This document shows positions 3,625-33,490 of a stretch of DNA of 64,000 nucleotides, one piece after another. How positions within the stretch are numbered: position 1 is the stretch's first letter; every line of letters starts with the position of its first letter. Source of the DNA: Chlorokybus atmophyticus (taxonomy: Eukaryota > Plantae > Mesostigma and Chlorokybus algae); contig RHPI01003369.1 of NCBI GenBank assembly GCA_009103225.1, positions 751,500 through 815,499 of the forward strand, given 5' to 3'. A program made the position numbers and the translations under genes. The notes below the pieces were generated by a model that was given only the letters and a program-made list of their open reading frames with translations, searched no databases and was not told where the DNA came from.

Positions 3625-6600
3625 TTAAGGTACCTCAGGGAGAGTCATTGGGACCTCCTCAATTGGGTCACCAGTGTGCAAGCGTGGTTCCGAGGCGCGT
3701 GTGTTCTCGTAGTAGAGGAGGACATCAAACTGCTTCGTCAATTGACTTCTCCCATAGTAGCGGCGCTGACGGTCACGCTCCCAGGTGTACACGACCCCGA
3801 TGTAGCGCAAGCAGAGGTCTTCCTTGTCCAACACCCGCGTTGCTTCATTATCATCTCTGAAGCTGTGCCAAAACGCTGGCAACCCCGACTGCATAAAATA
3901 CACACAACAAAAGAACATTGAGATACAAGCCAGGGTGTCCTCTCCAGTAACACACAGAGTAGCCAATGCACATGGAGCCACCTGGTGAAGTAAGTGTTCG
4001 TAAGTGTCTTCGTTGGCCGGGACGATGGCCAATCGCTCAGGAGGTTCGCCCCACTCCGCAGCCGCAGTCACGGTGCCGGTGTAGTTAACCTGCAATGTTT
4101 TCACCAGTAAGCGCAGCCGTAGCAGCTTCATTGGGTTGGACCAGATGAGCGCTGCTACCTGTGCTATGAGGTATGTCTTCTCGCGCCGTGCTTTTCGCGC
4201 ACTAATTGGCCGAGACTGATCTCAAATCTGTTTGGACACCTCTTTCTCCTCGATGAGTTAATAATTGCTCACTAGCAAGCAGACGCAGTCATGCAGCGTT
4301 AGCGCAAAGCAAATTGGCAACGGTAACAGAACGTTGGCACTTGTGCCGACACCCAACTTCACGGCTGCACAGTCGCATCGTTGTATAACATGCAGTCACT
4401 GCAATTATGGCATTGTTTGGATGGTGTGTTCAAGAGCTTGCTCACTATGAACATAAATAGTCATGTGTGCATGACTACAACACGAAACAACTAGCGCGTG
4501 ATTGATGGTAAGGTGCATGCACTGCTTGGCCAGCACACCTTGCCAACAAATGCACATGCTTGGGCAAACTGTTTAAGACTGTGCATCATACGCACAGTCA
4601 AGTGCATATGGCAGCATATCAAAACAGCATAGTGAGCGACTTAGCACCATCAGAGCTTACCTGGGACATGTTGCCCATGTCGTCGCGCGTGCGTCACCTG
4701 CCTGCGAGTTGTGCGCCCACACTACAATCTTGGTACCCGTTCCGAAACACTTCTGGTCCAGGTACGCAATCAGTGCCTGCACATGCTCACGTAAGGATAC
4801 ACGCACTGTGAGCGGAGAGCGTGTCAGCACAGTTTTGCATAGGTGCCCCCCTTGCATGCGCACATCAAGAATCTTTATCATGTGCTGTTCCCGAACATTC
4901 CGAGATTCATCCAGCGCCAAGAACATAGACTTGTTGTATTGCTCTGAATCTGTGAATACAGCGCGACAAACAATTGATGCTGGTCACACTTTGATTACTT
5001 ATACGCAGACAATCACAATCAAGCTGAAGGCGCAGTACAAAGCCAGATGGCAACAAGGACGCAAGCGTACCAACGACTATCAGCGCACTCTGCTCTGCGT
5101 AGAAGAAGTCGTCTGCGAGTTCATTCTGGTTGCGGGTGCCCTTATTTAGCAACTCGTGTTTCCTCTTCAGCATGTCGTTGAGCATGTTCCAGACGTGCTG
5201 CTGGCAATCCGCACAGCCAAGGCTACCTGCAGCCAGTAAGAGCAAAGGCTCAGATATACCATAGTCAGGCCTTGTGTTTGCGTGTTTCAAAACATCTGGC
5301 TGAAAGGTTGCGTCGTATCTGCAAGCCCATACCTGTGGAAGCAACAGCAGTTGCAGTCACAAAGTTACAATGCAGCTTGACACTGCCTGCTCGTTCAAGT
5401 TGGAAAAGCATACCACTGCTCGGAGCGGAATGCATCAAAGCACGCATACCGCTCCCTGACCAGCTCAAACAGTTCATGGTCTTCTGTTCCCCGGAAGCGA
5501 AGCACAGCCTGCATGGCCTCGCGCATGCAGTACAGGTCCAGGCCTGCACTAGTTCAGCACATAATTCCAGTACCAATGCTTAGGTGCGTTTGCAAGCTCA
5601 GTACAATAGCAATAGTGTCCCGGTCAGCAACGAGTGCTCACCATAAACGCCTATCAGACCAGGGCCATACGGGTCTGCATGCCACAGAGTATAGGCCCGG
5701 TCGGGTTGATAGCAATGTATCCAGCATTGCACTACAGTCGTCAGTACTAAACCGGACAAGTGTTATGACCGCCACCCGTACTTTGGGCTTCAGCCTGCGA
5801 GCACATCTGCTTGTTACTGGCATCTTTGCACAACAGCCTCGCATTGCCAATCAGAGCTACCAATGCACTGGAAAGGGACTTACGATTCCTAATTGTGAAC
5901 GCAGCCACCTGTTGTACTCTCGAAGCCAGCCAACAAAGTCCAAAACGTCAGCGTTTCGCCACATCCAAGGTGGAAACCTCCTGTGCATATGTTTCGTGCA
6001 ATCATGATCACATTGCGTCCAATCAGAAGTAATTGTCACACTGTGGAACATGACAACTCACGGCTTCAAGTTGTTGCGTTGCATGAAGGATGCTTGACAA
6101 ATGCACCTTAGCACTGTACTCTCACCGACTTTGCAATTCTTACGCTTGCTAACCTGAGTGTAGACAAGGCTTCAGCCGCCACTGTTATGCTGTTGTCCAC
6201 GCCGCGCACAAAGCGGTTGACTCGGTAAGCGTCCGGCCAGTCGGCTTCTAGCGCAACTGCTCTGAAACCGTGCTCCTCTATCAGCCTCCTGTGCGCCACG
6301 CATCATACAATGGACATCACTCAGCGTTTAATCAACTTGTGGCCCAACGGCAAACAGAACAGAACAATCGCAGAAAGCAGGCTCTGCCGCTCACCAGCCC
6401 TGTGCTGACACTAACGTAGTGTGACACTACGTTAGTGTCAGCACAGGGCAAGAAAAGAGCAGCGCTGCTCTTTTCTGCATCTTTTTCTTTGTTTCTTTGT
6501 TGTTGCTGATGCCTCGCCCGCAGGGGAGGGGGGGGACCGGGGGGGGAAGGGGGCATGCCCCTGACCAGTTACGCACCTGGTCATGATTGCATGTTGGTTG

Positions 6601-7126
6601 GAAAAAGTCCTGCGTGTCGTGCGATCCCTCGCCAATCAGCACAGATTGTGCTTTGCCGGCCTCTTCAACTAGTTTATCGTAGGACGTAGCAAGCCCGTGA
6701 GCTACACAGCAGGCAACGAGTGCAGGTAACCGTATTAGAGCTTGTTTTGCTGAAAATAATAAGCAGCAAAGATTGAAAACACGTGTTGCGTAACAGCTTT
6801 GCTTTATCTAACAGCTGGATGCAGTCGCTGACAAAAGAATAGAAGCCTCAGCCAAGCGTGAGGCTGAAGCTCAAGTTGAAGCTGCAATTCCATTGACAAG
6901 CAATAGTGCAAGCTCCCCGCAACTTGCATAAACACTGCTGCAACGCCAAATTTGCCACGGGCTATCCACGCTTAGCATAAGTGCCCACTTTGATGGCATG
7001 CTGACGAATGCAGTCCCCCTGGCTGGAAGCAGCATGGGGCCTTTCCAAGCCCCAAACCAACCAAGGGTTGGCTTCTCCTGCTGCTGCTGGCGGAAGCGGC
7101 ACATGCAGGCCGGCTCCCTCAGCCAT
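3625..7126 (-). pseudogene. Erythromycin esterase family gene, copy A (full length, disrupted)
   Basis: Exons encode MAEGAG...CIRQHAIK | LTGLATSYDKLVEEAGKAQSVLIGEGSHDTQDF | [27 protein letters not shown] | RFPPWMWRNADVLDFVGWLREYN | WAHNSQAGDARAT | ...RYIGVVY...KQFDVLLYYENTRA. Lesions relative to copies B and C: one extra base in exon 2 (A-run 6602-6606; 30 nt versus 29 nt from the Asp codon to the donor), micro-exon donor GT mutated to AT (5317-5318), and a 1-nt deletion near 4183-4185. Confidence 0.85.
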
Positions 7127-7189
7127 CGCCTTCAAGATGACGCCACCACCACCGCCTGCAGCTTAGCCAGCGCAGGCGAGACGCTGCGG

Positions 7190-7563
7190 CTAGCTAGCGT
7201 GTGTAGAACAGGCTTGCTTGTGCTGAACACGCGTGTGTGCATGCAAACAACCACTGAAAAGCTCCCCTCCACAGTGTAGTATTCCAGAAGCAGGTGCCAA
7301 AAGCTGCCAACAGCAAACCGCGTGGCCGTAGCCTTTGACGATGAAGTGTTGAGCTGTGGACAGCTGATGGACACGCTTGAGCGCAATGCTGCCAAACTCA
7401 TCCGCGTTGGTGCAAGTGAAAAGCACCCACCGCTGACTTGTGACGTGTGAGTTGATGGCAAAGCCATCAACTGATGTGCTTGCGTCGATGTTGCTGCCAA
7501 CGCCATCATCATCATCCAGCAAAACTAGTGCAACGCTAGACATCATGGCCATCATCGTCTGCT

Positions 7564-7596
<33 letters not shown>

Positions 7597-8750
7597 GGCG
7601 GCGGTGCTTCTGCCCGAAGGCACTGCCGCAGCAAGGCTTGCCAGTTCAGTATCGCTCAGAGCTTGAACTAGCGCTACAGAGTGTCTGGCTAGCGTTGGGT
7701 CTTGCGTGTTGAACGTATGAAGTGGCGGGTTCATGCATGCACAAGGCGTTGCTGTGCCTCGCTGAAGCAAGCTGAAGGAAGCGACTCCGTGCGAAACCGC
7801 TTACCCAGCATCAGCGTGGCTGGCTCTATCGCTGTGCAAAAATGAGCTGTAAGCAACAGTTATTGCTTGTGTTTGGTTTTTCAACATCTGCTATGACGAT
7901 ACCTGTGCATTGCCGCAATGCACAGGTATCGCTGACAGCTTAAGTCAGCTGTCAGCAACAGCGTTCGCAGGAGATTGGCACGTTGCATGGCACAGCGTCA
8001 TGTGGCAGTTTGTGATGGTGCAAAGATGAGATGTGATTGAACGGACTTGCAGCACTGCCAGTGATGTGTCGTCACCTCCTGTGACGACATGTGTATGTCG
8101 TGCACAGATATGTGTCTCAAGTTCATGAAAGCTTCAAGCACATCAGATTGACGTACTTGCGGATAGCAGAAGCCAGCGCTGCCATGCCAGCCTGAGGCCC
8201 CCCCGCCGCCGCCGTCATCGCTGCTGCTGTGCTTTGGCCGGAAGGCGGCATTAACGTCAGGGGCTTGCTGACTGTGCTCTTGGGTGGCGGCGACTTCTTT
8301 GTGGTGGACTGCTTCTGCGCAAAGTCTGTCTGCCGCAGCAGCCTGCATGTGCTCCACAAGCATCGCCGAGTTGAAGCTGCACGAGGCTGGCCCGTGTGTA
8401 CTGACTGTGTAAAGTGGCGGCGACACGTGCACACGCAAAGACTGAGACAGCAGAAGGCTGCCTACTCGGCCTACTGCTCGCTCTGGCAGCGACAGCTCAG
8501 CGGCTGGCTGGCTCTGATGCTGTGCAAAGGCACCGGTAGGCTATACAGCCAGCACCTAGGCAACAATGCTTGCTTTCCGCTCCGCATGTGTTATGCTGGT
8601 ACCATTACCTTGACGCTGGAAGATGGGAGAGGAGTGCTTGTCCTATCTTTGTTGTGCACTTGCAAGCGTTGGCATACACAACGATTCCTCCACAGTACAA
8701 GGGTGGCTATTCTACTGTTGGGCTCTGGGCTGTCAATTAGCTTGTAGGCC
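7190..8750 (-). CDS. Possible multi-exon hypothetical or degenerate gene
   Basis: Several open stretches bounded by splice-like signals, e.g. ccag|AYKLIDSPEPNSRIATLVLWRNRCVCQR...|gtaatg (about 8609-8748) and ctag|LLDDDDG...WVLFTCTNADEFGSIALKR (7190-7525). I could not join them into one consistent frame and recognise no domain. Confidence 0.25.
7566..7604 (+). repeat. (GCC)n trinucleotide repeat
   Basis: Direct read of about 10 tandem GCC units followed by GCG units. Confidence 0.9.
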
Positions 8751-11700
8751 TGGAGTGTGAAAGAGAGCGGGTGAGAGAGGCTTGAGCGTGTTGCGCTGGC
8801 ACACTTTGGTAAGCTTGTGCTACAGGTGTCCCACTTGCTGGCGTGCATAACAAAGTCAGAATGGTAGTGAGTCCGGAGAGACGGCGCAATGGTTTGATGG
8901 AGCTAGCGTTGGGTCTTCTGTGTTGCAGTAGACTGTGTGAGGTGACTGCCGACACATGTAGGCTGGATGACTCTGTTTCTGTCACAGCGGCAAGTATTGG
9001 TTGTTGTATCTTGTTACACGGGCAGCATGCAATCTGGTACAAGTCAGTTCTTTACTATGTTCTACTCCCAAAGGGAAGTGCGTGCCGGTACCAGTATATT
9101 ACAACACTGCGACTGAATCGATGCACTGGCCAATTGGTAGGTAAGTGCTGCTTGAGCGCTCGTAGGGAGGCATGCAGGTTATCATATTTTGCTCAAAATC
9201 GTGCAAGATGCAGGTAGGCACAGCCTTCAAAGCTGTTCCCACCACTCAGTGACCAACTTCTATCACAGACAAAGTTGATCACTTGGTCAAACACTGCTTA
9301 TAGCATATAGGATGCAGGGATTTTGGCATGCAAGAAAGTGTGAGGCATGCATCGCAAGTCACATACTACAGCACTCAGCACTTGCATTCGTCACCGTGCG
9401 TTCCACCTACTCATTACCTACGCTTTACTACTGCCCAACCTTGTTAGACATGCAGGCAGGCAGGCAGGCAAGCGCCATTACTCCAATGACATTGGCAGTT
9501 GTCATTGCTCCCCATGTACTCAGACTTTGGTTTTAATCTTTGATGTTTAGCACTGCCATGCATGCCAACAGGGCGGGCTCTAATTACCGAACACTACCTA
9601 TGCATGCAGGGTGCTCCCGGTCAAGCACCCACCTTACCACACCACCACCACATAGCATCACGCATCGCAACATGCCCGCCTTATGCCTTAACATAGGGTA
9701 GCCAGCCGCTCACCAAGACCGCATGGACTGGCCCCTGGCACGGGAACGGCTACGCCTGTGTATTTAAAAGCACGTGCATGCACAACCTTAATACCACATA
9801 GCTTAGTATGTACTACCAGTACGTATTAAGCGTAGTACATTGACACGTAATACGTTGCGTAAATTGATAAGGTGTCAGCATGGAGTGACCATATTGCTCA
9901 TATTCGGCGAGCTTGTGATGCTCGGCCGCATGCTCTTCACGGAACACGGAATGTGATTACTCGATGCTGTCTACGTCATTGGTAGGTGTGTACCACGACA
10001 TAGGTGTCTTTATAGCCATGTGTACATTATGCGATCATGACAATAGTCATTGATCAGCTGTGCATACAATAGTTTTTTAACGTTGTACTACTATTACTAT
10101 GCAGGGAATACATGTATAAATGTACACATAACTCATGAGTGGATTGGCTTGACCGAGACAGTTGTAACATAGCTTTTGTAATATATAGGCTCATTATTAC
10201 GCACTTAGTGTTGCCTTGCGGCAGCGTGTAATCATGACATGCATGTCTGCATCGCGTAGCGTATGCCATGTGCAAATAAGGAGTCCTCAAAGGTCAGCAA
10301 ACAATGTCATACAACCACTGGATTATTTGCATGCTTTAAGCTCATCCATCATATGGATTATAGTAGTGAACAAAGTTATTGTTGCATCCAATGCATGCCA
10401 ACACCATGTGTTGCTTACAATTTTTAATATACACACATATGATTGCTAATGTTAAAAGGATACTAGCGGGTCACTTATTAGTTGATAAGATGATAAGGTA
10501 ACAGTCCAAGGTGGCTGCTAAGTTCAATAGCACATGTCCATGCCTGTGCCTGACAGCACTTCACATATCATATACACATGTTGCCTTTGCCAAGTATTGA
10601 CGCTTTCGGCCCGCCGGCGGCTGCGTATGAACATACAATCCTTCAACCAAACTTGTGGATGCTACGATAAAATACAACAGATTGCAGTATGTAATCTTTC
10701 ACATATATTATACTATATATGTTGTGAAATGTTTATCACCAAACATGTAGGGAGGTACTCCTCAACCTTATAAACAGCAACCAAAGGTGACATCAATGAT
10801 AATGAGTATGTATTCATCGCTTAGAAATCCAAGAGTTTTACAAATGGGTACAACAGATAGTATGCTGCATGCCATGCATGCATGGGTGTCATTCACAACA
10901 AGCACATGCACAACATGCAACTCCGTATCATACATAACTCACCACCGTACTACGCTACCTACGCTATTACTACCCTACACGCTGTTTGCCGTGTGTGTGC
11001 ATTTGCTTTTGTAAACATGAAAACTTAACTGCTCGTTAATTTAACAATTTGGGCAATATACTTCGGTTATCATGTCAAATTTTGTCTTGTAACTTAAGGT
11101 AGGAGAAGTATAATAGATGACATGTGAAGAGGAATAAATGGGATGTGCACAAAATTGCATATGCCAACATATGTGCATACGTGCAGCGGCTTCACATAGG
11201 TGCTGTCTCAAACCTCAGGCAAGGCATGTCGCATGTGATCCATACTTGCACTGGCTCGTGTTCACATGGGAGCCAAGGGCTGGCCACTGGTAATGGTTAC
11301 CTCGAGGACAGTACAAAAATACAGCTTGCTGTCGCACACATGTGAAGTAGTGCATGATGCACATTCCACGTGCCTCACATTTCAACACATGCTGGCACAG
11401 CAGCACACCCTTTCGTACACAATCAAATCACACACAACGCCCCAACACATATGCAACCACTTAGCTAAGCCACCTCGTTTCTTTCTCTACCATTGACTCT
11501 ACGGCTCTACTTAGTAGTAGTCTCAGTTAGTACCGCCAGCCCTGATTGGTAACAAATTCGTGATTGCCTGCACAAAATACCGTGTGCGGACGCCCGCCAT
11601 CCCCCAACTGTCCAAACATCTGAACTCTCACCATTGTTGCTCAGTTGTTTGTGATGGTGAGCTGTTCAACAACAACAAATTGCGACTGACGTTGTTTGCA

Positions 11701-11924
11701 TGCAGATGTGAAAGTGAAGGTCGCTGTGGTTGAGTCAGGGTAGGTAGCTGTGCAGCTGTGGTCAAGTCAACTATACTTGAAGGTGCACAGCGCTTGACAT
11801 GTGGTAGCGCATAAAGCAGAAACAGCAACTACACTGCAGCTCTTTGATTAATAGCAACTGTGGAACGTAGACGTGCTCACCACTGTGCACATGCTGAATA
11901 AGCGCCCATGACGCAGTTCACAAC

Positions 11925-12503
11925 AGAGTTCAATCCGGTATAACCTGCGCGACCTCCTCAATGGGCACCGGCATCGTTCTCGAGGGGCTCCAAAGCACAC
12001 ATTTGTTCATAGTACTGGAGGGCGTCAAACTGCTTGGTCAGGTTTCCTTTCCCATAGTAATGGTGCCGTCGGTCTTGCTCGGTGTTGTACATCACCCCAA
12101 TGTAACGCATGAAGTGGTTCTCTTTGTCCAACATCTGTGTCGCCTTTTAATGTCCCTGAAGCAAAGCCAAAAAGCCGGCAATCCCGACTGCACACCGGTA
12201 AGGGACAATCAGTGAGCGTACATCGTTTGTATTACATTCAATTGTGCACCGGGTGGCAATGCAACCAACATTGAGCACCTGATGCAGCAAGTTCTCGCAC
12301 GAATCCTCTTGGCCTGGGCACGAGCGACATGCGTTCAGGACGCTCACCCCATGCCGGAGCGGCAATAACGTTCCCAGCAAACGCTGTCTGGTTACATCCC
12401 CAAGTTGGACAACCAGTTGTATACCTTCAATGAGCGACAGAGGCTGGGATAGCATTGCAACATACTTGCCCTATGAGGAACGACTTGTCAGTGCCATATA
12501 CGG
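11925..12503 (-). pseudogene. Erythromycin esterase family 3' fragment, copy D (remnants of last three exons)
   Basis: Remnants YGTDKSFLIGQ|gt (12466-12500), FAGNVIAAPAWGERPERM / CPGQEDSCENLLHQ|gt (frameshifted) and SGLPAFWL / QMLDKENHFMRYIGVMYNTEQDRRHHYYGKGNLTKQFDALQYYE (frameshifted). No upstream exons found. Confidence 0.85.
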
Positions 12504-14962: not shown

Positions 14963-17900
14963 TCAACGTCCTTCAGGAGTAGTCTGCAAGACCTCCTCAA
15001 TGGCTTCACCGGCGTCGTGATCGAGCGGTTCAACAGCACGCGTGCTCTCGTAGTACACGAGCGCGTCAAACTGCTTCGTCACCTGTCCTCTGCCGTAGTA
15101 GTGGTGTAGACGGTCCCTCTCCGTGCTGTACACCACACCGATGTAACGCATGAAGCGATACTCCTCGTCCAACATCTCCTTGGCTTCGTTTTCGTCTTTG
15201 AAGTTGAGCCAAAAGGCTGGCAGGCCAGACTGCATGCGTTGAGGGGCTTAGTAGTTAACCAGATAGTTTTCAGGTTGATATGAGACTTGCAGAGATAATC
15301 AGTGAGCCTTCGGCATCACCTGGTAGAAAAGATGCTCATAGGAGTCTTCCCGGCATGGCATCACTTGAACGCGCTCAGGCGGGTCACCCCATTCCAATGC
15401 TGCAGTCACGGTGCCAGTGAATGTGATCTGCATGTGGAACACTTAGCAAGCAGACACAAGCATGATATGTAGAGTGAGACCAATGTATACCTGCCCTACG
15501 AGGTAAGCCTTGTCACTGCCATGCTTCTCGCGCACCAACTGGTCAAGACTGAACTCGCACCTGCTGCAAGTGTCAAAGTAGCGTTATCTGAGTAACTTGT
15601 GACAGGATGGCATCCTGTTACATGTTGGCCAGTATGCATGCGACTGCAGTCATGCGCACTTGCGCGCAGTATTATACACAGGGGAGCTTTCCTGTGACTA
15701 TCGAAGTGTAACTTACCCGGGGGCTCTCATCCAGTCTGTTGCCCGTGCGTCACCTGCATGCGAGTTGTGCGTCCACACAACAACCTTTGTTCCCTCTTCA
15801 GAGCGCTTTTGGTTGAGATACTCAATAAGAGCCTGCACAATTAGCAACAATCCGTTGACACTTGCTACGTCTGTGTGGACGTCGAGTTCGCTGTTGATTT
15901 GTTCACACTAAACTTACATCAAGTATCTTCATCATGTGCGACTCTCGCACATTCCAGGAATCATCCTGTGCCAAAAACATGGCTCTGTAGTACTTCTCAG
16001 AGTCTGCGTGCAAGTGAGTTGGCAAGAGGAACCTAAAAACCTAACAGTATGCACAGGTAGAACATGCAATCTTGGTAGCTTTCAATAAAGCAAGCAACTG
16101 CACTGCTTCAATACAGATACACTACTGAGCCTCTAGGAGGCCCCAGCAGGCGTACCTGCAACAACCAGTGCGCTTTGCTCTGCATAGAAATAGTCATCGG
16201 CAAGCTCGTTCTGGTCGCGATGCGCTTTGCTCACAATCTCACATTTCTTCTTCAGCATGTCGTTGAGCATGTCCCAGACATGCTGTTCGCAATTGGCACA
16301 GCCAAGGCTAGCTGCATGGCAATCACTTTATGAACACAAACCCGTAACGAATGCAAGGGGTCTGAACCAATGGCCTCTCTACTGCAGCAAAGGCGGTTGT
16401 TGGAGCATAGCAGTTCACATCGTTGGGATACCTGCCAGCCCATACCTGCATATTGTGCCAAATAGCCTGGTTGATCTGGTGGTGAAACTAAGTGCACATG
16501 CCGTGATCACTTCACACAAGCTACATCTCATACCATTGCTCGGAGCGGAAGGTGTCAAAGCATGTGTACCGCTGCCTTGCCTGCTCAAATAGTTCGTGGT
16601 CTTCTTTCGCCAGGAACCGAAGCACGTCTTGCATGGCTTCGCGCATGCAGTATAGATCCAGACCTGCAAAGTTGTTCAGAAGGCATCAAGTTTGAGACAC
16701 GCACCAGTAAACATACCCTATTGTATCTTCTGTACACACGTCTGTGCGAGTGCTTACCATACACGCCTACGAGGTCAGGGCCATACCGGCCTCCAGCATG
16801 GCCTGCAGCAAAGCCTTCAAGTGTTAACTCCATGGCTGATGTAAGCCAGATTTAGCAAAATTCAGCACTGAGCAGAGAAACAAAAACCAATGTGGCCTTC
16901 ATGGCTGGCTGATGGCAGGGCTTGCGCTGGCGCATTCTTCTCTGACTAGCATGCATGCACGGTAACAGTCAGCTGGTCACAAGACTGTTGTTTTGTACAC
17001 CGCAATGGGTTTACACCTCTCCACCAAAGCAAATGGCATTGCATCGCATGCAGCTTGCTTATACAAGCTTGGTGAGCGTACTGACCGTTCCAGATTTTGC
17101 CATAAGCCACATATTGTATTAGCGCAACCACCCAACGAAATCCAACATGTTGGCGTGGCGCCACATCCAGGCTGGAAATCTCCTGCGCATGTTCCAGTGC
17201 CGCAGAGTAGCTGTGTGTGTGTGTGTGCGTGCGCGCGTCCGCGCGTCCTACCAGCATTCAAGCCACGCGCAAAAAGGCACAATGGCGAGAGTGTGTTTTG
17301 CATATGGCATGCATGCGCTTTGCAAGCTAACAGCCGAGAGAAGTGATTGGCTCATGTGCACCTGAGCGAAGAAAGAGCCTCAGCCGCCACCGTCATGCTG
17401 TTGTCCACGCCGCGCACGAAGCGGTTGATGGCGTATGCATCCGGCCAGTCGGCCTCCAGCGCAATGGCTCTGAAACCATGCTCTTCTATCAACCGTCTGC
17501 AGAGCATTGAGGGTTAGCATTCTTCACATGACCCCCCCCCCCCCAAAAAAAACAACCAACTATGCGTTAGGCTGAAGCTTGCCACAGCTGTACTACAGCT
17601 GCGGCAAGCTGGGTTAGTAATCCCAGCTTGTAACATGAACTGCTGTCTTTTTAACGGTGACTTCAACCACATCAACATGAACAACATGCGTTGCTGGCGC
17701 TATGATACGTGCAAGCATTCAGTTACTAGAAAGGCTTGTGAGTAACCAGTGCATAATGGCGATGGCGATGTGTGTAAGAGACGCAAGCGTTTCACATGCC
17801 AACAAGATGAGAATGGGAGGTACCTGGTGATGATGTTGCGCTCGCTGTAGAAGTCATGTGTACCGTGTGAGCCCCTGCCTATCAGCACGAATTGTGCTTT

Positions 17901-18441
17901 GCCAGCCTCTTTGAGCAGCTCGTTGTAGGAAGTAGCGGCGCCCGTGAGCTACAGCAAGCATGCACAGCAATGGTCAGCATACAAACAGGAACAGGAAGTC
18001 GGTCAAACGACTTCTTCTTCGTGAGTTATACCATATTGTCAATGCACCCTTGAGGCCAAAGCAACTGAGCGACTTTACGAGCGGCTTGTAAAATGCTTCC
18101 GCCCGTAACCGTTACCAAGCGCAAGCACAGATTGTTTGTGCAATCAAAGCAATACTCACACAAGCTATGCTGCAAAACTATGGCTCCTACAGCTTTTGCT
18201 CTGGTACCCACTGCATGCTGCCCCATGTAAGACCACTGGTGGGCCTCTAGTAGGGCTTAAAAGGTCTCTGCTACATTCTGCAAAGCTTACATGAAGTGCA
18301 AGCTGCAAAAGCAATGCAGCTTGCACTTGCCTGGATGGCATGCTTCCGTATCTTCTGTCCCTGGGCGGAAGCCGCCTGAGGCCTCTTGATGCCCCAGATC
18401 ACATGGTCGCCAGCCTCTGGGGGCGTCGGCGTCTCCATCAT
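14963..18441 (-). pseudogene. Erythromycin esterase family gene, copy B (full length, premature stop)
   Basis: MMETPTPP...IRKHAIQ | LTGAATSYNELLKEAGKAQFVLIGRGSHGTHDFY | [15 protein letters not shown] | RFPAWMWRH...GWLR*YN | GLDLYC | WTHNSHAGDARAT | ...KQFDALVYYESTRA...TPEGR*. In-frame TAA at 17119-17121 where copies A and C encode Glu (WLREYN). First intron has a GC donor. Confidence 0.85.
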
Positions 18442-20243: not shown

Positions 20244-20848
20244 TAGGTGTGAGTTCAGTCTTGGCCAGCTGGCGCGCGGGAGAAGCACGGCAGTGACAGG
20301 GCTTATATACGCAGGGCAGGTATGCATTGGTGTCAATCTGTAGGTAGACCTGATCGTGTTCGTTTGCTGCAGTGGTTTATGTGAATAGATCACATTCGCT
20401 GGCACGGTGACTGCAGCACCGGAATGCGGCGAACCACCTGAGCACGTGCGAGTGCTGCCATGTCAGGAAGAATCTTATGATAAACTCCTCTAACAGGTGA
20501 TGCTTGAATCTCTCTGTGTATCCCTGCCATCTACACTATAGCCTGCAAACATGTACTCAACTGTTGGTGTTGTCTGATGTATGCAGTCTGGCCTACCAGC
20601 CTTCTGGCTCAACTTCAGAGACACCAATGAAGCCAAGGAGATGTTGGACAAGGAGTATCTCTTCATGCGTTACAGTCCGTGTGGTGTACAGCACAGAGAG
20701 GGACCGTCTACATCACTACTATGGCAGAGGACAGGTGACGAAGCAGTTTGATGCCCTTGTCTACTATGAGGACACGCGTGCTGTGGAACCACTCGATCAT
20801 GACCCCGGCGAATCCATTGAAGAGGTCCCGCCAGACTGTTCCGGATAG
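20244..20848 (+). pseudogene. Erythromycin esterase family 3' fragment, copy E (inverted, last three exons)
   Basis: Exon remnants CEFSLGQL.. (indels), ITFAGTVTAAPECGEPPE...SYDKLL*Q (in-frame TAA) and SGLPAFWLNFRDTNEAKEMLDKEYLFMRY / VVYSTERDRLHHYYGRGQVTKQFDALVYYEDTRAVEPLDHD (frameshift). Homology to copy B continues about 150-170 nt into the 3' flank. Confidence 0.88.
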
Positions 20849-21885
20849 ATGTTGAGTGTCGGTATTGGTTTTATGTGACACAAAGCACATCGCAGTCGCA
20901 GCATAGAACAGCACACAACAAGAATAAGAATGCGTAGCCCGTAATTGTGAATTTGTACAGTTCTCCAGGCAGCGCTTTAGTCATCCCTCAGTAATGTAGT
21001 GGTCGTAGGTGCAAAGGCCTTGAAAGAGATGGTTAGACAAGTCTGCATTCTTTCTTCATGCTGCGGGCGTGGTGGGAAATGCGCAATGGACAGCATAAGA
21101 AAGGTGAACATGCGTGCAGCTCGCGTCGGGAAGTAGCTGAAAATTGCCAGTTCACGTAGAGAGAAACAAGTACTTTGTCACGGAAATGTACATGTGCTTG
21201 CTATATGCAGTCCCGGCGCTCCCTACGCCTCCGCATATCCGCACACAGATGATGCTACTGACTGGTCATCAGCACGCGCATGGGAGCCGTCTCATCGTTG
21301 TTGTCATTGTCCTGATGCCGTGTTGACGGTGCAGATGGCATGGCAGGTATTATGACTGCCGAGGGGCAGTGCACGTGAGGGTAGACAGGCTAGGTGCAGC
21401 ACATAGCCTGGCGGTTACGAACGTGATGTTTGGGTGAGTGCATCACGGGCGCAACACGCATGTGTGGGTGTGTCATGGTGCCGGGCACGAAGTAATAGAA
21501 TTCATGCAAGTATGTGTTAGCATGTGTTGCTGAGTACGCATGCACACACACAAATGGTCGCAGACCGGCCCACCTCAGCACTGATGTTATATACACAATG
21601 CATGCACCGACAGTCACACCCGCCGCCTTCATGGTGTGCATCGATATTCGTTTCATGCAATCGATGGTGTAGACTATCTTGATCTACAAACTCAAAACTC
21701 CCATCACAATCTCAAGTAACAAGGTATATGTACGTGCGTGTAACTGTGTCGCACATAAAGCAGTGGTTGGTGAGCCAGTGCCAGTACTATTCAACCTATC
21801 TTTTGCAACTGCATAAACCAGCTGATAGCATGGTGCGTAGTGCCAACGGCATCCCACCCAACCAGCACCACACATGTACCCTGCA

Positions 21886-24010
21886 TCACTCCACATCTAC
21901 AACTACAAGGCATGAACTGTTCGGGAGCTGCATGCACACGCGGTTGGCATACACCGCAGATCTGCACCTGGCTATGTCCCACTCCGCACCATAGAGTGGG
22001 TGAGGGGAGCAGACAACAACACCATCCTGTGTACAATTCAAGCAGCGCACTTTACCTGTGGCGCCATTGCACAGCAGCCACGTGTGTACCGACACCCACT
22101 CACCATCCTTCCACATCTGCATTTGATCGCTAAGTACATACGACACCATATGTCCACTAACTCTGCAATCAACACGTTTGCAGCAAGTTACATCGAGTTT
22201 CGTGATGCAAGTGGCATTATTCTCTCCAGAAAGTGAAGTGGACCTGGACCATAACTGGAACTGGCTGCGTATCTGAGAGTGGGTATAGGGTAACTGCACC
22301 GTGCGCAGTGATGTGACAATCACCGCCAAAGCCATGGGGAGCAATGCCAACTGGTTCAGCTCGTGTTCAAGACATATCAAATCCTTCACCTCGAGGAAGC
22401 ACTCTTGGGTGGTGGTACTCAGCACGCTTATGATATTGTGATTTGTGTCATCGTTGCAGGCTGTGGCCACCTCAACAACAGCGGCGTTTATCATGCCAGA
22501 TGGCACGGGATGGCCCCTGGAATCCAAATGTACACTGAGTGGTAGAAAGTCACCAACATCAACTGCCAACTCCTTGTATTCGTTCAGATCCATCCTCCAA
22601 AGCCCGAGTTTATGATGGACTTGATGGAAAAGCAACACTGTGTCGCCATGCACAGCCAACACAATAGACGAAGGAGTCTCATAGATCTGTAAACGTGCAG
22701 CACGTTGGATGTCCCACACCTCCACATGGTTGACCTCTGAACAGCTGAGCACAGCGACCAGGAGCAGCTCCCCATTCCAATAAAGGCGGACAATTGGTTT
22801 TGACCTGCCAACATCCTCACGGAGTCGCCCACACGCTATGCTTGAACAGCTGTCATCCAACAAGTTCCACACATGCAGCTCCAACTCCCCACCCCCACCC
22901 CAGCAGGCTGAAACCACGCAATCAGCGCCACAGAAACACACGTCCAAGACTCTTTTGTCTGCGTCCGACCGTGGTAGCAAAGTGCAACTTTCTGTTGGAT
23001 GATGCTTGCGGTGCTGCTGCACATTGTCACCAGGGGATGAGTGCGCGGCGATGAAGACCGTGCGCCAATCAGTGAGCCAGCCAGGGTCTTGTCTGTGTCG
23101 CTCGGCGTAATCAGGGTAATCTCTCTCACAATACTTGCGCCAGAGGTTGTCTTGCTTGGATGTCGCCCTCCAGTGCCTGGAACGTAGTCAGGTATAAGAT
23201 AGATGAACAATTGAGTAAATGAGTGAAAACACACCAGTATGAGACTGCGCTTGCGAACGCATGCAGTGTGAAGTCTGCACGCACAGAAAGAAAATTGGTT
23301 TGCTGCTGGAAAGCTCCTTTATAAGGGCAAACTGACAGTATCGCATAGCATGAAAGGTATAACCCGACCAATTTCTTCATTTTACACAATGACAGAACCA
23401 GAGAGGGCAGTTACATCCAACACGTTTGCGGTTGGATAAGTTTATGCATGGCCTGCAGGAGTCTGAAGATGCTGCCAGCACAGGAACCTCGGGCCGTTAC
23501 CAACCTCATGCAATAGCAATGCTTGCTGTAAACTTACTTGCTTGGCAGTCGTCGACTTCCTCAACACACAAATGAGCTGGAAAGGCAATACACAAGACTA
23601 GAGCTGGAGAGGCGAAGACACAAGACACAATACACAACATGGATAAGCCAAGCACCGAACCAGACAATTGTTTACATGCATATAATACAAATCCATCAGC
23701 AGTCACGTCACCAATTCAAGCTGAGCGACTGTTAATTATTGTACGAAGAACTTTGACAGCAACCGACTCTGCATGCAACAGCAGACGCGCCGTTTCACTC
23801 TCAGCCGCCACAGCAAGTCAGCAAGAACAGGCTGCCTGCTGCCTGCTGCCTGTTTGCTGCTGCTATCGCTTACCAGCAAACAGCGGACGCCGCCACAGCT
23901 TCCTGCCACCCCGCACGCTCCAGCACCAACTCCAGGAAGTCGGCGTGCAGCTGACCCCAGTCGACGCCGCCCACGCCGTCGCCATCACCGCCGCCGTCGC
24001 CGCCCTCCAT
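21886..24010 (-). CDS. F-box protein with predicted WD40-like/beta-propeller C-terminal region (2 exons, 475 aa)
   Basis: Exon 1, 24010-23874: MEGGDGGG...VDWGQLHADFLELVLERAGWQEAVAASAVCW|gtaagc. Exon 2, 23176-21886: HWRATSKQDNLWRKYCERDYP..., continuing into the 378-aa ORF. The phase-2 join gives 1428 nt. DWxxL..LxLVL...ASAVCxxWR...DxLW matches the F-box pattern. LHVWNL, VEVWDI and LGLWRM suggest propeller blades (inference). Confidence 0.8.
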
Positions 24011-24260
24011 CGCCGCCCGCTACAAAACACAGCTATAGCACACTGCGTCTGTCACAGCTGCTTGGCTTTGCTTGGCTTCCTTATCGCTACTAGTAAACAG
24101 ATGAGTAATCTGCTTGGTTGCATAGCTTGTATGCAGGCAACCACGAGCCTATCGAATGAATACATTACACGGTTGCCAATTGGCGGTTGTGTAGTGTCCA
24201 ACGCTACATTACTCAAACACAATCATACGGTGGGCTATACACGAGCAATGTCCTCAAGCG

Positions 24261-24302
24261 CTCCTTACGTGTACATGCTATCTATCATGTACACGTAAGG
24301 AG
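24261..24302. other. Perfect inverted repeat (17-bp stem, 8-nt loop)
   Basis: CTCCTTACGTGTACATG (24261-24277), loop CTATCTAT, CATGTACACGTAAGGAG (24286-24302); the arms are exact reverse complements. Confidence 0.95.
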
Positions 24303-24850
24303 GGGGCTGCATGCACTGCAGCTGTAGCCAGAGCCGTAATGGATGTGGCCTGCGCGCGCTGGAACGTGACAGATATGCGCTGGTGGAAGGCAGTCATAAA
24401 GCGTGATAGATACCGCATCTCCAACTCACGAGCATCCAATGCTCGGCGCACACAAGTGGCCAACAAGTCCATCAACGGGCGACCCATCCAACCATGCGAC
24501 TCGATCGCCAACGGGATCAGTATGTCTGTCGGGACATGGTTCGAGTACTTGGAGCGCTTCTCTCGCTCCGCACTTTGTGCAGCTGAGCCTGCTAGGTAGT
24601 GGCTGCCGGTGATGGTGACATCGAGCAGCATGCGCGAGTCTCGACCCCGCTCCGAGGCAACGATGTCGATACAACGTCCCTGACGCTCACCCTCTCGGAC
24701 AAGTAGTACCCCTGTTTGCTCGCAACGCACGGTGTAGCTCGCCTTCGCCTCCGCATAATGCCAGCAACAGCGTTGCGCACAACATCGTGTGTCACAATGC
24801 GATGGTTGTGGCGCATACAAGATGCATATCACTAGTTGTTTCAATATCAC
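24278..24850 (-). mobile_element. 5'-truncated, frameshifted non-LTR retrotransposon relic (restriction-like endonuclease domain plus end of the CCHC finger)
   Basis: Across frameshifts: DMHLVC / HRIVTHDVVRNAVA / RCIDIV...LLDVTI...AEREKRSKY...LIPLAIESHGWMG...QRISVTFQRAQA. This matches the H-x3-C, RHD, (P)D..D, E-x2-K-x2-KY and PLxxExxG motifs of RLE-bearing LINEs (CRE/R2/NeSL/RandI-type). No RT domain in the window. Confidence 0.85.
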
Positions 24851-26166
24851 AACAACTGCAAACCACTCAATTGCACTTCAGCAGCACGAGAACGCCCTTA
24901 CATCAAGGTTCAAGTTGTTACATCATGTCTGATTTTGTGCACTCACAGCTGAGATGATGATGATGCCCCAGTGTGCTTCATAACGCAGCACAAGGGTGTC
25001 GTTGTTGTTGTGGTTGTTGTCGTCGCTTGCTATAGCGGGCACATCTGGTTGGACAGCCTTCGAACGACCGCGAGCAACATACATGCACATGTTGTGTACA
25101 CAATCTGTCACAGTGTGGCACATGCAGTGTGCATTGTGTGAGGAAGTTACCAGGTGCCTTGTAACACTTAGAGTGCCATCATGCAGCTTCAAAGGTCGTC
25201 CAAGGGTGCAACCAGATCTGCCTTCTTGTGGCTTGTGAATGCTAGTCTCAGCAGCAACGCCAACCTCATACATGCAAGCCCCTCTTGGTATTGACTAACA
25301 ACATGAGGTTGTGCGCATGTCTGCGTCGCATACAACCATACTATCTCATACATGCATGCTCAAGTCCCCTGCACGCATTCGGGTGTTGCACACAGATTTG
25401 GCTTGGCTTCACAGAGGCCTACGACGCACACCAGCAGCCAGTGCATCTCACACTTGTCACTGCTGCCTGCTGTGTTGCTTCCAAAAGACCCTCCCAATGC
25501 TATCCTGGTAACGTACATCATGCAAGTAGGCTTACTTGTCTGCCTGCGGCGCATCACATGAAGAGAAGAAGCCTGCTTTGCAATTGATTGCCGCTGAGCA
25601 AGCTTCCTCCTACCAACATGAAGGTCTGAAAAGTCTGTCTTGAACTGACACTGACAGACGCCCTGAGAAGCTGTATGCCGCTGTGTATGTGGTTGGTAAT
25701 GTGGTTGGTAACGTGGATAGGAAAGGCATAACAGAGACGCTGACCCCGGAAGGAAGGGAGCGTGCATTTGAGATGCGGAGTCAAGAGGCTCAGCGCGGCT
25801 TCCAGCCAGGGGGAGTGCATTCGCAAGCACGCTGTTCAGGTAGCACTTCGTTGCTGACCACTGCAACACTAGTGCAAGGTCAAGGGCTTGACAACCGTTT
25901 TTGTCAGCAAGTATAATGTGTTTGTTGACAAACACATGTATAATGGAGCACCCCGTAAACACGGTGTGTTGGCACAAGGAATCGCAAAGAGCAGCGCAGT
26001 GAGTGACTTATGGGGTGGGGCTTTGCTGCTGCAATCCATTATCTCAAGTAGCTGGCAGTTGGAGAACCGGGCCTCTCAGGTGCTGTTGGCAACAAACCTG
26101 ACTGCTGTCCGTGCTGTTGCGTTTGTAGCTCACGGGCGCTGATTCAACCTGAAGTTCATATTACAG

Positions 26167-26603
26167 CGACCTCGTCATGGAGGTCGGCAAAGCGCAGTTG
26201 TACACAAAATGTGTCGATTGGTTGCAACTCGCACGGCACTTCTACAGCCAGCTTGCTCTTATCACCAGGTGCATAGTCAGCAAAGCTGCCTGCAGCACTG
26301 CACAGCAGCGGCTGTGTGCTGCCTGTCACATACTGTAGTACGCATGTACGACAAGCGCTAGCAGTCAACCAACATGTATGCAAGCAGTGGCATGCCCGTT
26401 TGCATCACCTTGCGGTAGGACTCACCACTTATGCGACCAAAGAGAGGCATGCCAGCCTGGCTGAGCTTTTGCATGCGCACAATTTGCTTGAAGTCTGCCT
26501 TGCGTGTAGCACTACCCAGGCGGCGTACAGAGGAGCATGGCTTCAGCTGTCAGTATTAGAAGTCGATGAACAAACTGCAGAGACGATGGTCATGCCAGTT
26601 TGA
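26167..26603 (+). CDS. Possible hypothetical gene (last two exons), weak F-box-like segment
   Basis: Exon 26167-26268 (DLVMEVGKAQLYTKCVDWLQLARHFYSQLALITS) joins in phase to 26339-26603 (THVRQALAVNQHVCKQWHARL...stop). Start not resolved. Confidence 0.3.
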
Positions 26604-26871
26604 CCAACAAACTGAGGCATTCATTACAGCACGCACAACATGCCCCTTTACAAGGCTGTACAGCGGTTGCCCCACCTGCATCCCGCAGCTACAAACCCTC
26701 AACAAACCCTGCAAAGGCTGAGAGCATCACTTCTCCAACATCGCAGCTGTGTTGCCTATCATACAGTTGCTGCTACCATCAGTGACGTTGTAATGTTCAT
26801 CCCAAAAGGCAGGAACATGAGACTTTCGTCCAACATCTGGACAGTCCTGCATTAATCTGAAGCTGCGCTGC

Positions 26872-29800
26872 TCACAGCCCAGCAGGAAACGTTTGCGGCA
26901 CTTCTGCTTCCGGCATGTCGGACTCGCGCTCCATGGGTTCAACTGCACGAGTGTGCTCGTAGTAGATGAGGGCGTCAAACTGCTTGGTCACGTGCCCGCG
27001 ATAGTAGTGGCTCTGGCGTTCAGTCTTGGCCGCGTAGATGACACCGATGTAACGCATCAGCCGGTTCTCCTTCTTCAACATCTTTGTCGCATCATTCTCG
27101 CTCCTCAAGTTCAGCCAGTAGGCCGGCAACCCAGCCTGCATGTCAATCACATCACCATAAGTGCATGACACTCTGCTGTATGACAGTGCTCAAAGACTAC
27201 AAACTGAGCTGTCCTGATCTTTTTGGCATGGTACCAAGACAACATCCTCAGCATTCTTACCTGGTGGAGTAAATCTTCATAGGAACCCTTCATTCCCAGG
27301 CGCACTTGCATGCGCTCTGGTGGGTCCCCCCACTCATGGGCTGCGGTCACTGTGCCAGTGTATGTGATCTGGAAGCATACCCTCAGGTCAATGAATGCTA
27401 CACGAATGCACAGTATGCATTTGTCGAGTTCTGCCTTGAGGAAGCAGCAAGGATATAGCGTGAGACATACCTGGCCAATGAGGTACGACTTGTTGGTACC
27501 AAGTTTTTCCCTCACTAGCTGGCCCAAGTTCAGCTCATTCCTAAAATGCATGAATGATCAAAGGGACCAATTGCACAAGCGGGAAACCTTATGCTGTTGT
27601 ACAACTGATACGGTGTTCTTGAGGTGCTATGAAGCGGCTTGCATGTGCAGCAAAAAACAACAGCCAGCTAAGGACCTAAAGCATGCGCATACTGTATCCC
27701 AGGCAAGGGATACGTGCAGGTTGGACATGCATCATATCAATAATGATTACCTTGGAAATTTAGACATGTCTGTCGCGCGTGCATCACCAAGGTGTGACTT
27801 GTGCGCCCACACCACAACCTTTGTAGGATCCCGTCCAGCGCGCTTGCTATTCAAGTACTTGATCAAAGCCTGCACATGTATCAGTGTTTCAGCTGTCTTG
27901 CTGCCTACAAAGTGGGCGTAGCTGGCCCATGCATGCTGTTGACGCTAACTTACACCGAGTATCGTCATCATGTGCGTGTCTCGCACATTCCAGGATTGAT
28001 CTTGCCCCAAGAACATTGACTTGTAGTACTTTTCTGCGTCTGCAGCGGCACAGGATTGACCACAAGGTTGATGCATGCAAGGCAGGCAGTGAAGCTATGT
28101 TCGCGTACCTGCCACAACTTGTGCATTCTGCACGGTGTAGAAGTAGTCGTCAGCAAGCTCATTCTTGTCGCTCGTTGATGCATTCAGTAATTTGTCCTTG
28201 TTCTTCAGCAAGTCATTCAGTATTTTCCACACTTGCTTCTCGCAATTCGCATCACCTAGGCTTGCTGTCAAAACGAAACACAATACATGTCAGTACAGTT
28301 ATGTAGCATTCGCGGCACGTCATACTTGAATTTGTAACTTGCAGCATTGTAATCAGCATTGTAATCCTCAGTTGTAGCAGCAGTGCTCTTCATGACTCCG
28401 TACCTGCAAGGCCATACCTGCAGACCATCATGAGGCTCAGCACATTGCTGTGTACCGCAAGAAAAGTCTGCTACAACCAAGACTGTACCACTGCTCCGAG
28501 CGGAAGTTGTCAAAGCACTTGTAGCGTTCCCGGGCTTCCTCGTACAGGGCATGGTCCGTTTTGTGCAGAAAACGCAGGACCTCTTGCATGGCTTCACGCA
28601 TGCAGTACAGGTCCAGGCCTACATGCAATAATTGGGTGGAAGTCAGCGTACGCATCCCAGCATGGAGGTCGGCTTGGGCAGAAGTCCAGGCACGTGAATA
28701 AGTAGTGTATCCTCAGCAAGAGAAACTTACCGTACACACCCACTAGGTCATGACCATATGCGCCGCCACCATGCACTGTCAGCACAACAACACGTCAGGT
28801 TGACTTCAATGCAAAGCTACAAGACTCTAGTGATGAGTTGTTTCGAGCAACGGACGGTAACAGGGGGCTTAGTGCGCTACTCATTCATGCCGACTTGCGA
28901 TACATTGCACCACTATAAAACACACTGCAGTAAAGCTCTCATACTGCTTTGACAATAAGCACGGTCCAGCCAAACAAATGCTGGGCACTCATTCCAATAA
29001 TGATAATTGATTGTGATATGGACACATATGAAAGCACTGCACCACTACTCTAATGCTCGCCTTCACCACTTTGGGGCGTGCCCTCTGGTCCCGCAGGAGC
29101 GTCCTTCATGACCATGTTTCATGCATCATCAGCTTATATGCACACCAACATCACTCCAAGGTACGTAGCTACATGTGATGTGCAGCTCGTTTTTTAGGCA
29201 AAAATCACTATCAGTTTGTGAAGTGTTGCATGCGGCATTATATACAAGATTCATAGGACATTTCTGTGCGCCTACATGATACGCAGCATCGTTACCGTTC
29301 TCTGTTCTCCTTGTGCGCTCCGTTGGACCTCTCCAGCGGCTTCATTCTGTAGAATATCAACAGCACAATCACCAACACGACAGTCTGGGACAACACCAGC
29401 AGCAGGCAAGTGGTGACCAGCCAAGCGCAACACCACACTGACCATCAACTTGAGTAAATCAGGTGTCACGGCACTGTGCAGTCTGTGCTTACCGTGCTGC
29501 TACGCTTTGCTGCCTCCTTCAAGAAAGTGTTGTACTCTCGCAGCCAGCCCGCAAAGTCCAAGACATCAGCATTGCGCCACATCCATGTTGGAAACCGCCT
29601 GCTATGGGCAGTGCGCAGAATGCGCAACCGAATATGATGATGCAGTACAACTTGACAATGCGTACAGCTCCGTGTAGGCGGTGCATGCAGCACCTAATGC
29701 GATTTTGGTGCTGCATGCACATACTGAGACGAGCAGCACAACTGGATGCTGCTGGCAGCATATCACTGAGACACAGTTATCAAAACAACTCTTCGACAAT

Positions 29801-30464
29801 GTTGCACTCACTTGAACCCAGCCAAAGATTCTGTTGCCGTTTGAATCTCGTCGTCAACGCGGCGCACGAACCGGTTGATCTGGTAAGCATCCGGCCAGTC
29901 TGCTTCCCAGGCAACTGCTCTGAAGCCATGCTCCTCAATCAAACGCCTGCATAAAGATTATTAGCTTGCACAGTACAGAACAGCAAGTGCAGAGAGGCAA
30001 GGCACAGTACTGCATGTCATCTCGCACAGTGCTGGAACTAACTGTTGTCAAACTGTGTGAGCCAGTAATTCTCCAACAACCAACCAACCTTGTGATGAGT
30101 GCACGCTGGCGGTAGAAGTCATGTGTGCCGTGTGATCCATCCCCAATGAGCACCACTTGAGCGGTGGCAGCTTCTTTGATCAGCTCGTCGTAGGCAGAGG
30201 CAGCACCGTCAAGCTGCGAGCCCTCTCAGGTTAACAGTTTGGCATGCCGGTTTCATTCAAATGATGTGTAGGTTGCACGTGCATGACCTTCAGGCATGTG
30301 CCAACATAAGGAAAACAAGTCACCTGTACAGCGTGCTTGCGGATGGTGTCTCCCTCACTGGAAGAAGCAGCTCTCTCTATGCCCCAGGAGACGGGCCTGG
30401 TCGGCGTTGGTGCTGGTGGCGCCGTCGGCGTGGCCGTCGTAGCCCTCCTCTCCGACATCGCCAT
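26872..30464 (-). CDS. Erythromycin esterase family protein (EreA/EreB-like hydrolase), copy C, apparently intact, about 14 exons
   Basis: MAMSERR...IRKHAVQ (30464-30324) | LDGAASAYDELIKEAATAQVVLIGDGSHGTHDFYRQRALITR (30213-30089) | [27 protein letters not shown] (29946-29812) | RFPTWMWRNADVLDFAGWLREYN | GVYG | LDLYC | EKYYKSMF..SWNVRDTHM | WAHKSHLGDARAT | NELNLGQLVRE | YTGTVTAAHEWGDP | RYIGVIY...QFDALIYYEHTRAVEP...QTFPAGL*. No stop or frameshift found in the exons I checked. The motif series is that of bacterial erythromycin-esterase family proteins. Confidence 0.9.
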
Positions 30465-33189: not shown

Positions 33190-33319
33190 GCACGTAACGT
33201 GGCAGCAACGTTAGTACTTATTGTATTATCTTAATACATGTGAGACATGTTCAGATCATATAAGCCATGTGAAACCATACGCCGCCAACTGTGCACCATG
33301 TTGTCCTCATTTTTGGCAA

Positions 33320-33459: not shown

Positions 33460-33490
<31 letters not shown>

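Follow-up and report, generated by a model that had tools for sequence, protein, structure and literature searches.

The window analysed here is a stretch of 64,000 nucleotides of the nuclear genome of the streptophyte alga Chlorokybus atmophyticus (assembly GCA_009103225.1, contig RHPI01003369.1, positions 751,500 to 815,499 of the forward strand). It harbors a cluster of genes related to the bacterial erythromycin esterases (Ere). When the window was compared with itself, coding blocks common to five sites were recovered: three copies, named A, B, and C, are full-length, whereas two others, D and E, retain the last blocks only. An earlier note on this DNA had placed five Ere-like copies within 27 kb, and this is where we find them, in the stretch 3625 to 30464, which runs from the stop codon of copy A to the ATG of copy C. 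The copies and one small exon that is important for the models are as follows (positions are those of the window).

3625 to 7126, minus strand: copy A, an Ere-like pseudogene with 13 exons, transcribed (exon-wise alignment and ends of an RNA contig)
11940 to 12495, minus strand: fragment D, the 3' half of exon 11 with exons 12 and 13 (self-comparison and alignment)
14963 to 18441, minus strand: copy B, 13 exons, 494 codons (exon-wise alignment)
20245 to 20860, plus strand: fragment E, exons 11 to 13 of a B-like gene, inverted (self-comparison and alignment)
26872 to 30464, minus strand: copy C, 13 exons, 508 codons, transcribed (hand-built model and spliced RNA contig)
28404 to 28417, minus strand: micro-exon 7 of copy C, 14 nucleotides, conserved in A and B (alignment) and present in the RNA contig

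The model of copy C was built by hand from three-frame views and was then projected onto A and B by exon-wise alignments. Each of the three copies consists of 13 exons and 12 introns. The intron positions are identical, as had been claimed, and so are the phases; the exon lengths are nearly equal. The introns follow the GT-AG rule in A, B, and C, except for a good GC donor at intron 1 of copy B (CAG^GCAAGT, the caret marking the exon-intron border). Between copies the introns cannot be aligned, while the exons are 62 to 70% identical at the protein level. Fragment D is old, with 62 to 72% identity to B, and fragment E is 74 to 87% identical to B, with its breakpoint inside intron 10. Family membership was examined with the Pfam profile PF05139 (Erythro_esteras), the check that had been proposed: stop-to-stop pieces of A and C match it with 30 to 61 bits per exon (gathering score 26.4), and the exon matches are colinear along the profile (1-35, 38-71, 77-124, 135-181, 212-237, and 264-358). 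A precomputed PF05139 assignment also exists for the public protein models of A (P0001) and B (P0002), and the profile is matched by all five copies.

Transcription was examined with contigs of two sequencing runs, X1 (labelled "RNA?") and X2. A contig of 1,167 nucleotides from X1, with two mismatches to copy C, is spliced at eight junctions exactly as modelled, namely introns 5 to 12, and the letters of micro-exon 7 sit between the two sides of one joint. Since the contig is spliced at eight predicted junctions, X1 represents RNA, and copy C is both transcribed and spliced. A second X1 contig is 90 to 95% identical to exon 6 of C, and its loose ends correspond to letters of exons 5 and 6 of copy A; because these flanks equal the letters of A, we conclude that A is transcribed and spliced at exons 5 and 6. 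The contigs of run X2 are 91 to 95% identical to C, some of them unspliced and one spliced at the junction of exons 3 and 4, and they probably derive from a related strain or species. The mapping of RNA to individual copies, which had been suggested as a check, thus assigns transcripts to A and C, so that C is not silent; a transcript look-up for the public proteins of B (P0002) and C (P0003) returned nothing on record.

The 12 introns of each full-length copy, taken together with the spliced transcripts, place the family in the nuclear genome and already refute bacterial contamination or mis-assembly, an explanation which could draw on the bacterial-type similarity of the proteins and on nothing else. 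The GC content, about 51% across the cluster and similar in the flanks, also speaks against it, as do the presence of three diverged paralogues plus fragments on one contig and of an intervening open reading frame with eukaryote-type look-alikes. We regard its probability as negligible.

The structure of copy C hinges on the junction between exons 4 and 5. The features concerned, and a codon of the same copy at which RNA and reference differ, are listed here.

28731 to 28803, minus strand: exon 5 of copy C in its long form, with the acceptor AG at 28805-28804, entered in phase 0 and left in phase 1 (phase logic and RNA to 28789)
28795 to 28797, minus strand: in-frame TGA of copy C, codon 172 of 508, with CGA at the aligned place in A (alignment; outside the RNA contig)
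27797 to 27799, minus strand: codon AAG (Lys) of copy C in the AH(N)SH motif, AAT (Asn) in the RNA (RNA contig and alignment)

The exon 4 donors of A, B, and C are strong and homologous (ATC^GTAAGT, ACG^GTCAGT, and ACG^GTAAGC), and in all three copies they end the exon in phase 0. The short acceptor of exon 5, located at 28776 in C just before a His codon, is in phase 1 in B and C. An acceptor that keeps the frame lies 28 nucleotides upstream of it in C, and its counterpart in B (GGAG^TTAAC) leads into an open frame; moreover, homology at the protein level (H-A/G-G/D-G...YG) extends upstream of the short acceptor of A. The long X1 contig reaches position 28789, which is 14 nucleotides upstream of the short acceptor of C. 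Because the exon 4 donors are all in phase 0 and the RNA passes the short acceptor, we assign to C the longer exon 5, which therefore brings the TGA at 28797-28795 into frame. The short form was rejected on the same grounds, since it breaks the frame; in C, it would lead to a frameshift followed by a TAG, so that every canonical splice choice ends in a premature stop. We also considered a donor located 4 nucleotides downstream of the exon 4 donor, which would repair the phase, and discarded it since its GT is merely the +5/+6 dinucleotide of the GTAAGT/GTCAGT consensus and is a GC in C. Likewise, the end of an X2 contig at 28803 was not accepted as proof of the long acceptor: the letters upstream of that point are collinear with the intron of C, and the contig is thus unspliced RNA or the DNA of a relative. 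In the reference sequence, copy C carries a premature stop. The earlier note had presented C as the only copy without visible lesions, which no longer holds, and a disruption of C was among the observations which, according to that note, would count against its proposal.

At the second site, position 27798 (plus strand), the reference has C and the RNA contig has A, which changes Lys into Asn. In the AHNSH motif, this Asn (N296) does not vary across the family, and the Lys of the reference is a second derived, probably harmful change in copy C. Copy C either varies here between alleles or strains or contains an assembly error, and it follows that either better alleles of C exist or the reference contains errors.

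Lesions in the other copies were located by alignment, as listed below.

6577 to 6701, minus strand: exon 2 of copy A, carrying two indels, -1 at 6693/6692 and +1 in the T-run 6606-6602
5317 to 5318, minus strand: donor of micro-exon 7 of copy A, GT changed to AT
4159 to 4227, minus strand: exon 11 of copy A, where a -1 frameshift near 4185 leads into a TAG
17119 to 17121, minus strand: TAA in exon 4 of copy B, within the conserved WLR(E)YN stretch, with GAG in A and C

Copy A has at least five lesions. The two frameshifts and the dead donor previously reported for it are all present; to these we add the -1 frameshift in exon 11, a 5-nucleotide gap, and the loss of the long acceptor of exon 5, where TA replaces AG. 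The two indels in exon 2 jointly shift the GEGSHDT motif out of frame, and when A is read from its own ATG, a TAG is reached after 56 codons. In copy B, the nonsense codon previously noticed is the single TAA at 17121-17119; it is the sole lesion, and the remainder is open over the 494 codons. The fragments are truncated and frameshifted, as had been described: D contains +1, -1, and -2 indels, and E has four small insertions and, in addition, a TAA in exon 12. The locus thus offers the two features expected of birth-and-death evolution, paralogues with shared intron positions and independent disabling lesions in them.

Public annotations of this cluster are partial or erroneous. An exhaustive phmmer search with the last open frame of A retrieved, as near-identical proteins, the Joint Genome Institute (JGI) Chlat1 models for A, B, and C. 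Chrsp4S06252 (P0001, 304 residues) is a partial copy A which starts out of frame in exon 6, continues across intron 6, and lacks exons 7 and 11. Chrsp4S00499 (P0002, 459 residues) corresponds to copy B and uses an acceptor 27 nucleotides upstream; exon 4 is read out of frame, and the TAA is avoided in this way. Chrsp4S06253 (P0003, 150 residues) starts in intron 10 and covers only the last three exons of copy C. Screens for gene transfer or for resistance genes that rely on the predicted proteome will consequently misjudge the locus.

The history of selection was assessed by the Nei-Gojobori method over 443 aligned codons, from which the loop and the N terminus were excluded and in which breaks were coded as X. 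The ratio of nonsynonymous to synonymous substitution rates (dN/dS) is 0.15 for A-B, 0.15 for A-C, and 0.13 for B-C, with synonymous divergences (dS) of 1.2, 1.8, and 1.7, respectively. These values indicate that the copies are old and were long under purifying selection, so that the lesions would have arisen late, and they suggest that the genes encoded a working enzyme in the past. The terminal branch is longest for A (0.38 to 0.40, versus 0.15 to 0.24 for B and C). The view that the family was repeatedly duplicated and then discarded is borne out by this combination of dS > 1.2, dN/dS of ~0.14, and lesions that came afterwards.

These data also have to be read against the alternative that a functional enzyme is still made from at least C, perhaps also from B, and that the family is active, the stops being strain specific, assembly errors, or bypassed through an alternative exon 4-5 junction. 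We consider this unlikely, although several observations are in keeping with it. All pairs have a dN/dS of ~0.14; B and C have canonical splice signals, keep the residues corresponding to H50, E78, R261, and H289 of EreC, and carry one stop each; the mRNA of C is spliced over eight introns, and the canonical Asn of the RNA allele implies that better alleles of C exist. The X2 contigs, moreover, point to a related strain or species in which exons 3 and 4 are spliced. Against it stand the failure of every canonical splice choice in C, the inclusion in the RNA contig of sequence upstream of the short acceptor, and the location of the TAA of B in a conserved helix, where no splice choice can skip it. 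MAKER, in addition, provided no full model for A or C and read exon 4 of B out of frame, and real decay would account for a reference copy that has both a stop and a Lys where the family has an invariant Asn.

Regarding the enzyme family, phmmer against solved structures reached only the Bacillus cereus proteins BcR135/136 and not EreC, and a single exon searched against the PDB gave no match. With a profile search, BcR135/136 were matched at E values of 1e-29 to 1e-31, and EreC at 5e-8. The AlphaFold model of P0002 is weak (predicted local distance difference test [pLDDT] score, 58.6; predicted template modelling [pTM] score, 0.61); compared with solved structures, it gave E < 1e-7 only for 2RAD/3B55, 2QGM, and 6XCS/6XCQ, with template modelling (TM) scores of 0.43 to 0.56. 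The closest solved structures by sequence and, on this weak model, by fold are those of BcR135/BcR136, annotated as "succinoglycan biosynthesis protein" (2RAD, 3B55, 2QGM), which have ~15% identity to the algal protein in the fold alignment.

In EreC, H50 acts as the base, E78 and H289 hold the water, R261 is a stabiliser, and E47 is a helper of H50 (PMC7979712). When the EreC numbering is mapped onto the copies via the profile search alignment, H50, E78, and R261 are retained in A, B, and C. Copy A keeps Glu at E47, has Gln in place of H289, and has an Asp which replaces the invariant Gly adjoining H50. The His at H289 is kept in B and C, where E47 is replaced by Arg and by Asp, respectively. 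A past function of the family as a hydrolase may be proposed from homology and from the record of selection.

EreA, EreB, EreC, and EreD (EreC structures 6XCQ and 6XCS; PMC7979712) belong to the same superfamily and probably have the same fold, with H50, E78, R261, and H289 alignable and present in B and C; however, they are very distant from the algal copies, and macrolide activity is not to be deduced from the likeness. On the NCBIfam EreB model, P0002 scores 19 bits against a cut-off of 750 (the NCBIfam cut-offs are 750 to 800), and even a cyanobacterial homologue (P0151) scores 58 bits. By their sequences, the copies are therefore to be classified as superfamily members and not as members of the macrolide-resistance families EreA to EreD, and the name "erythromycin esterase" is no reliable guide to the substrate here. 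The suggestion of a defence system directed at macrolides or lactones, put forward earlier, finds no backing in these scores or in an EreC match that appears only in the profile search; a macrolide or lactone role is speculation.

Much closer to the algal genes is a bacterial subfamily of proteins of ~450 residues, annotated as "erythromycin esterase family protein" and found in cyanobacteria, Acidobacteriota, Gemmatimonadota, Verrucomicrobiota, and others, which can be aligned to them over the full length at 41 to 44% identity. Motifs common to both are GE.SHGT, VEADWPD, RFP.WMWRN, YGLDLY, WAHNSHLGDARAT, and GTVTAA. The algal genes differ from this subfamily in their 12 introns, in an N-terminal extension, and in ~25 inserted residues that separate WLR.YN from VG.YGLDLY in the region of intron 4.

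The search for relatives was based on two databases, one for the word search and one for phmmer, both of which contain the EukProt proteomes. A word search with the annotated B protein returned 6,647 matches; the best 120 are bacterial or metagenomic, a large number of them cyanobacterial, with 41 to 44% identity over the full length, and no eukaryote other than Chlorokybus occurs among these 120. In the exhaustive phmmer search, the Chlorokybus proteins have E values of 1e-29 or better, after which the values pass straight to 1e-11; apart from Chlorokybus, the best 20 comprise 17 proteins, every one of them of metagenomic or bacterial source. When one genome was scanned for each bacterial species, 593 loci were confirmed, the best 80 of which belong to Acidobacteriota, Cyanobacteriota, Gemmatimonadota, Verrucomicrobiota, Pseudomonadota, and others. 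The claim of a bacterial-type gene that has become fully intronised agrees with these nearest relatives and with the 12 introns shared by the copies.

Trees were calculated from A, B, and C with the best 80 bacterial loci or with 44 of those, that is, with bacteria as the only other organisms, and a quick tree was used for 47 rows. A, B, and C form one clade (Shimodaira-Hasegawa-like approximate likelihood ratio test [SH-aLRT], 100) in which A and B are sisters (99), giving the topology (C,(A,B)). The clade sits on a long stem and attaches to an unresolved bacterial backbone. Of the phylogeny that had been called for, the part involving bacterial homologues places the three copies together. 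Horizontal acquisition from bacteria appears to be the best-supported reading of these relationships.

Vertical inheritance of an old eukaryotic gene, with many losses and no transfer, would be in line with the patchy occurrence of PF05139, which among eukaryotes is recorded from fungi, a haptophyte, and a dinoflagellate, and with the long stem branch and the 12 introns. Yet no other eukaryote appears among the best 120 word-search or the best 20 phmmer matches, with EukProt included, and we hold this explanation to be quite improbable.

As for the donor, a cyanobacterial source in place of soil bacteria from another phylum, either through the plastid ancestor, with the gene then lost from nearly all other plants, or at a later date, is a possibility that we rate as rather unlikely, well short of an even chance. 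The best named matches are cyanobacterial (such as Mastigocladus, Trichocoleus, Nostoc, and Lyngbya), and a tree constrained to unite Chlorokybus with the 10 cyanobacterial rows exceeds the quick free tree by 21.5 log-likelihood units (approximately unbiased [AU] test, p = 0.69), a result which amounts to non-rejection only. However, the free trees put Chlorokybus outside the bacterial backbone with the cyanobacteria in a separate clade of their own, and the similarity is just as high, 42 to 44%, for proteins of Acidobacteriota, Armatimonadota, and Gemmatimonadota.

Taking these lines of evidence together, we consider it likely that the cluster is a horizontally acquired family of bacterial-type hydrolases that became intronised, was duplicated and kept under selection, and is now decaying in the sequenced strain. 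According to this model, the Chlorokybus lineage would long ago have taken up a bacterial-type PF05139 hydrolase gene into its nuclear genome, where the gene would have been extended slightly at its N terminus and would have gained 12 spliceosomal introns. Tandem duplication would then have produced at least three paralogues, related as (C,(A,B)), which presumably remained under purifying selection through most of their history. By homology, their product is predicted to act as a hydrolase without a metal, the water being activated by a His that is assisted by a Glu, an Arg, and a second His. Later partial duplications may have left the 3' fragments D and E, and the family would now be in decay in the sequenced strain, with at least five lesions in A, one premature stop each in B and C, and scraps in D and E.

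Several points weigh against this interpretation. The long exon 5 of C is deduced from phase logic and from only 14 nucleotides of RNA, and C would have an open frame if a weak phase-1 donor (AAGC^GTAGCA) were joined to the short acceptor, a pairing which the RNA contig does not fit. The stops of C (TGA) and B (TAA) are both read from the reference assembly alone, the RNA contig ending six bases short of the TGA, and the Asn found in the RNA contig where the reference has Lys means that the reference allele is not the sole one. The proposed horizontal origin, for its part, is drawn from lists of top matches and from a tree whose other members are all bacteria, and enzyme function would be assigned to the subfamily by homology.

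A different outlook on the same history is that the copies form a selected, lineage-specific set of enzymes for a microbial ester or lactone, of which intact alleles persist in some strains, the loss in the culture strain being due to released pressure. The RNA allele of C with its canonical Asn is in favor of this, to which we nevertheless assign a rather low probability. Under the preferred interpretation, a decaying acquired family, the locus is a tandem family with pseudogenes, that is, ordinary genome biology, and no new kind of system is revealed by it; in place of the undescribed system for which it had been thought the best candidate, what it displays is a dying acquired gene family and not a demonstrated defence system. 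Its value lies elsewhere, as a clean and datable case, from the earliest-diverging lineage of the streptophytes, in which a bacterial gene became a normal intron-rich gene of the plant lineage, expanded, and is at present disappearing.

In the literature searched we found no Ere gene linked to Chlorokybus or to other streptophyte algae, and gene transfer is not a topic of the genome paper. Acquisition of an Ere-type gene from bacteria has been reported for two other algae, Chrysochromulina tobin, a haptophyte (Ctob_004084; PMC4580454), and Fugacium kawagutii, a dinoflagellate (PMC11453091). To judge from these descriptions, they resemble the Chlorokybus genes in that a bacterial-type PF05139 gene is expressed from an algal nuclear genome. 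They are, however, single genes, in contrast to the five-copy cluster with dated decay in an early-diverging streptophyte.

In bacteria, the Ere-like gene and a phosphoribosyltransferase (PRTase; PF00156) look like an apparently conserved gene pair. Among 30 selected upstream open reading frames, 17 encode a PRTase directly upstream of a gene of the subfamily (for example, at 741-1406 of L001, 749-1408 of L022, and 812-1462 of L042, in the numbering L001 to L080 of the bacterial loci), and some Ere-PRTase fusions occur; a dienelactone hydrolase is found nearby in five cases. A fusion of an Ere-superfamily domain with a phosphoribosyltransferase domain has also been described for Rv2030c of Mycobacterium tuberculosis, in the HspX operon (PMC4410610). 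By its description it resembles the bacterial fusions, and it is a mere lead to a stress-linked role of the bacterial subfamily. When ten bacterial partner PRTases were searched against the window by tblastn, nothing was found below an E value of 0.4.

Other features of the window were recorded in passing. Ten long open reading frames between the copies had no match in a Pfam search. Neither did a stop-to-stop open frame of 433 residues at 21889-23187 (minus strand), located between fragment E and copy C and possibly identical with the JGI gene whose number falls between those of B and C. Its look-alikes according to a protein language model are Streptophyta STERILE APETALA-like and F-box/WD40 clusters (score 0.94, of low recognition value and to be taken as a lead only). 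Just upstream of copy C, at 30929-31076, a run of 148 N marks an assembly gap, and a stretch of low GC content (0.40 to 0.44) with a long TA-rich microsatellite lies at 33319-33567. Finally, intron 2 of copy A contains, at 6406-6470, a near-perfect palindrome (TGACACTAACGTAGTGTCACACTACGTTAGTGTCA...) beside long C-runs, seen both in the alignment and as a tandem-repeat match, which may be a small inserted element.

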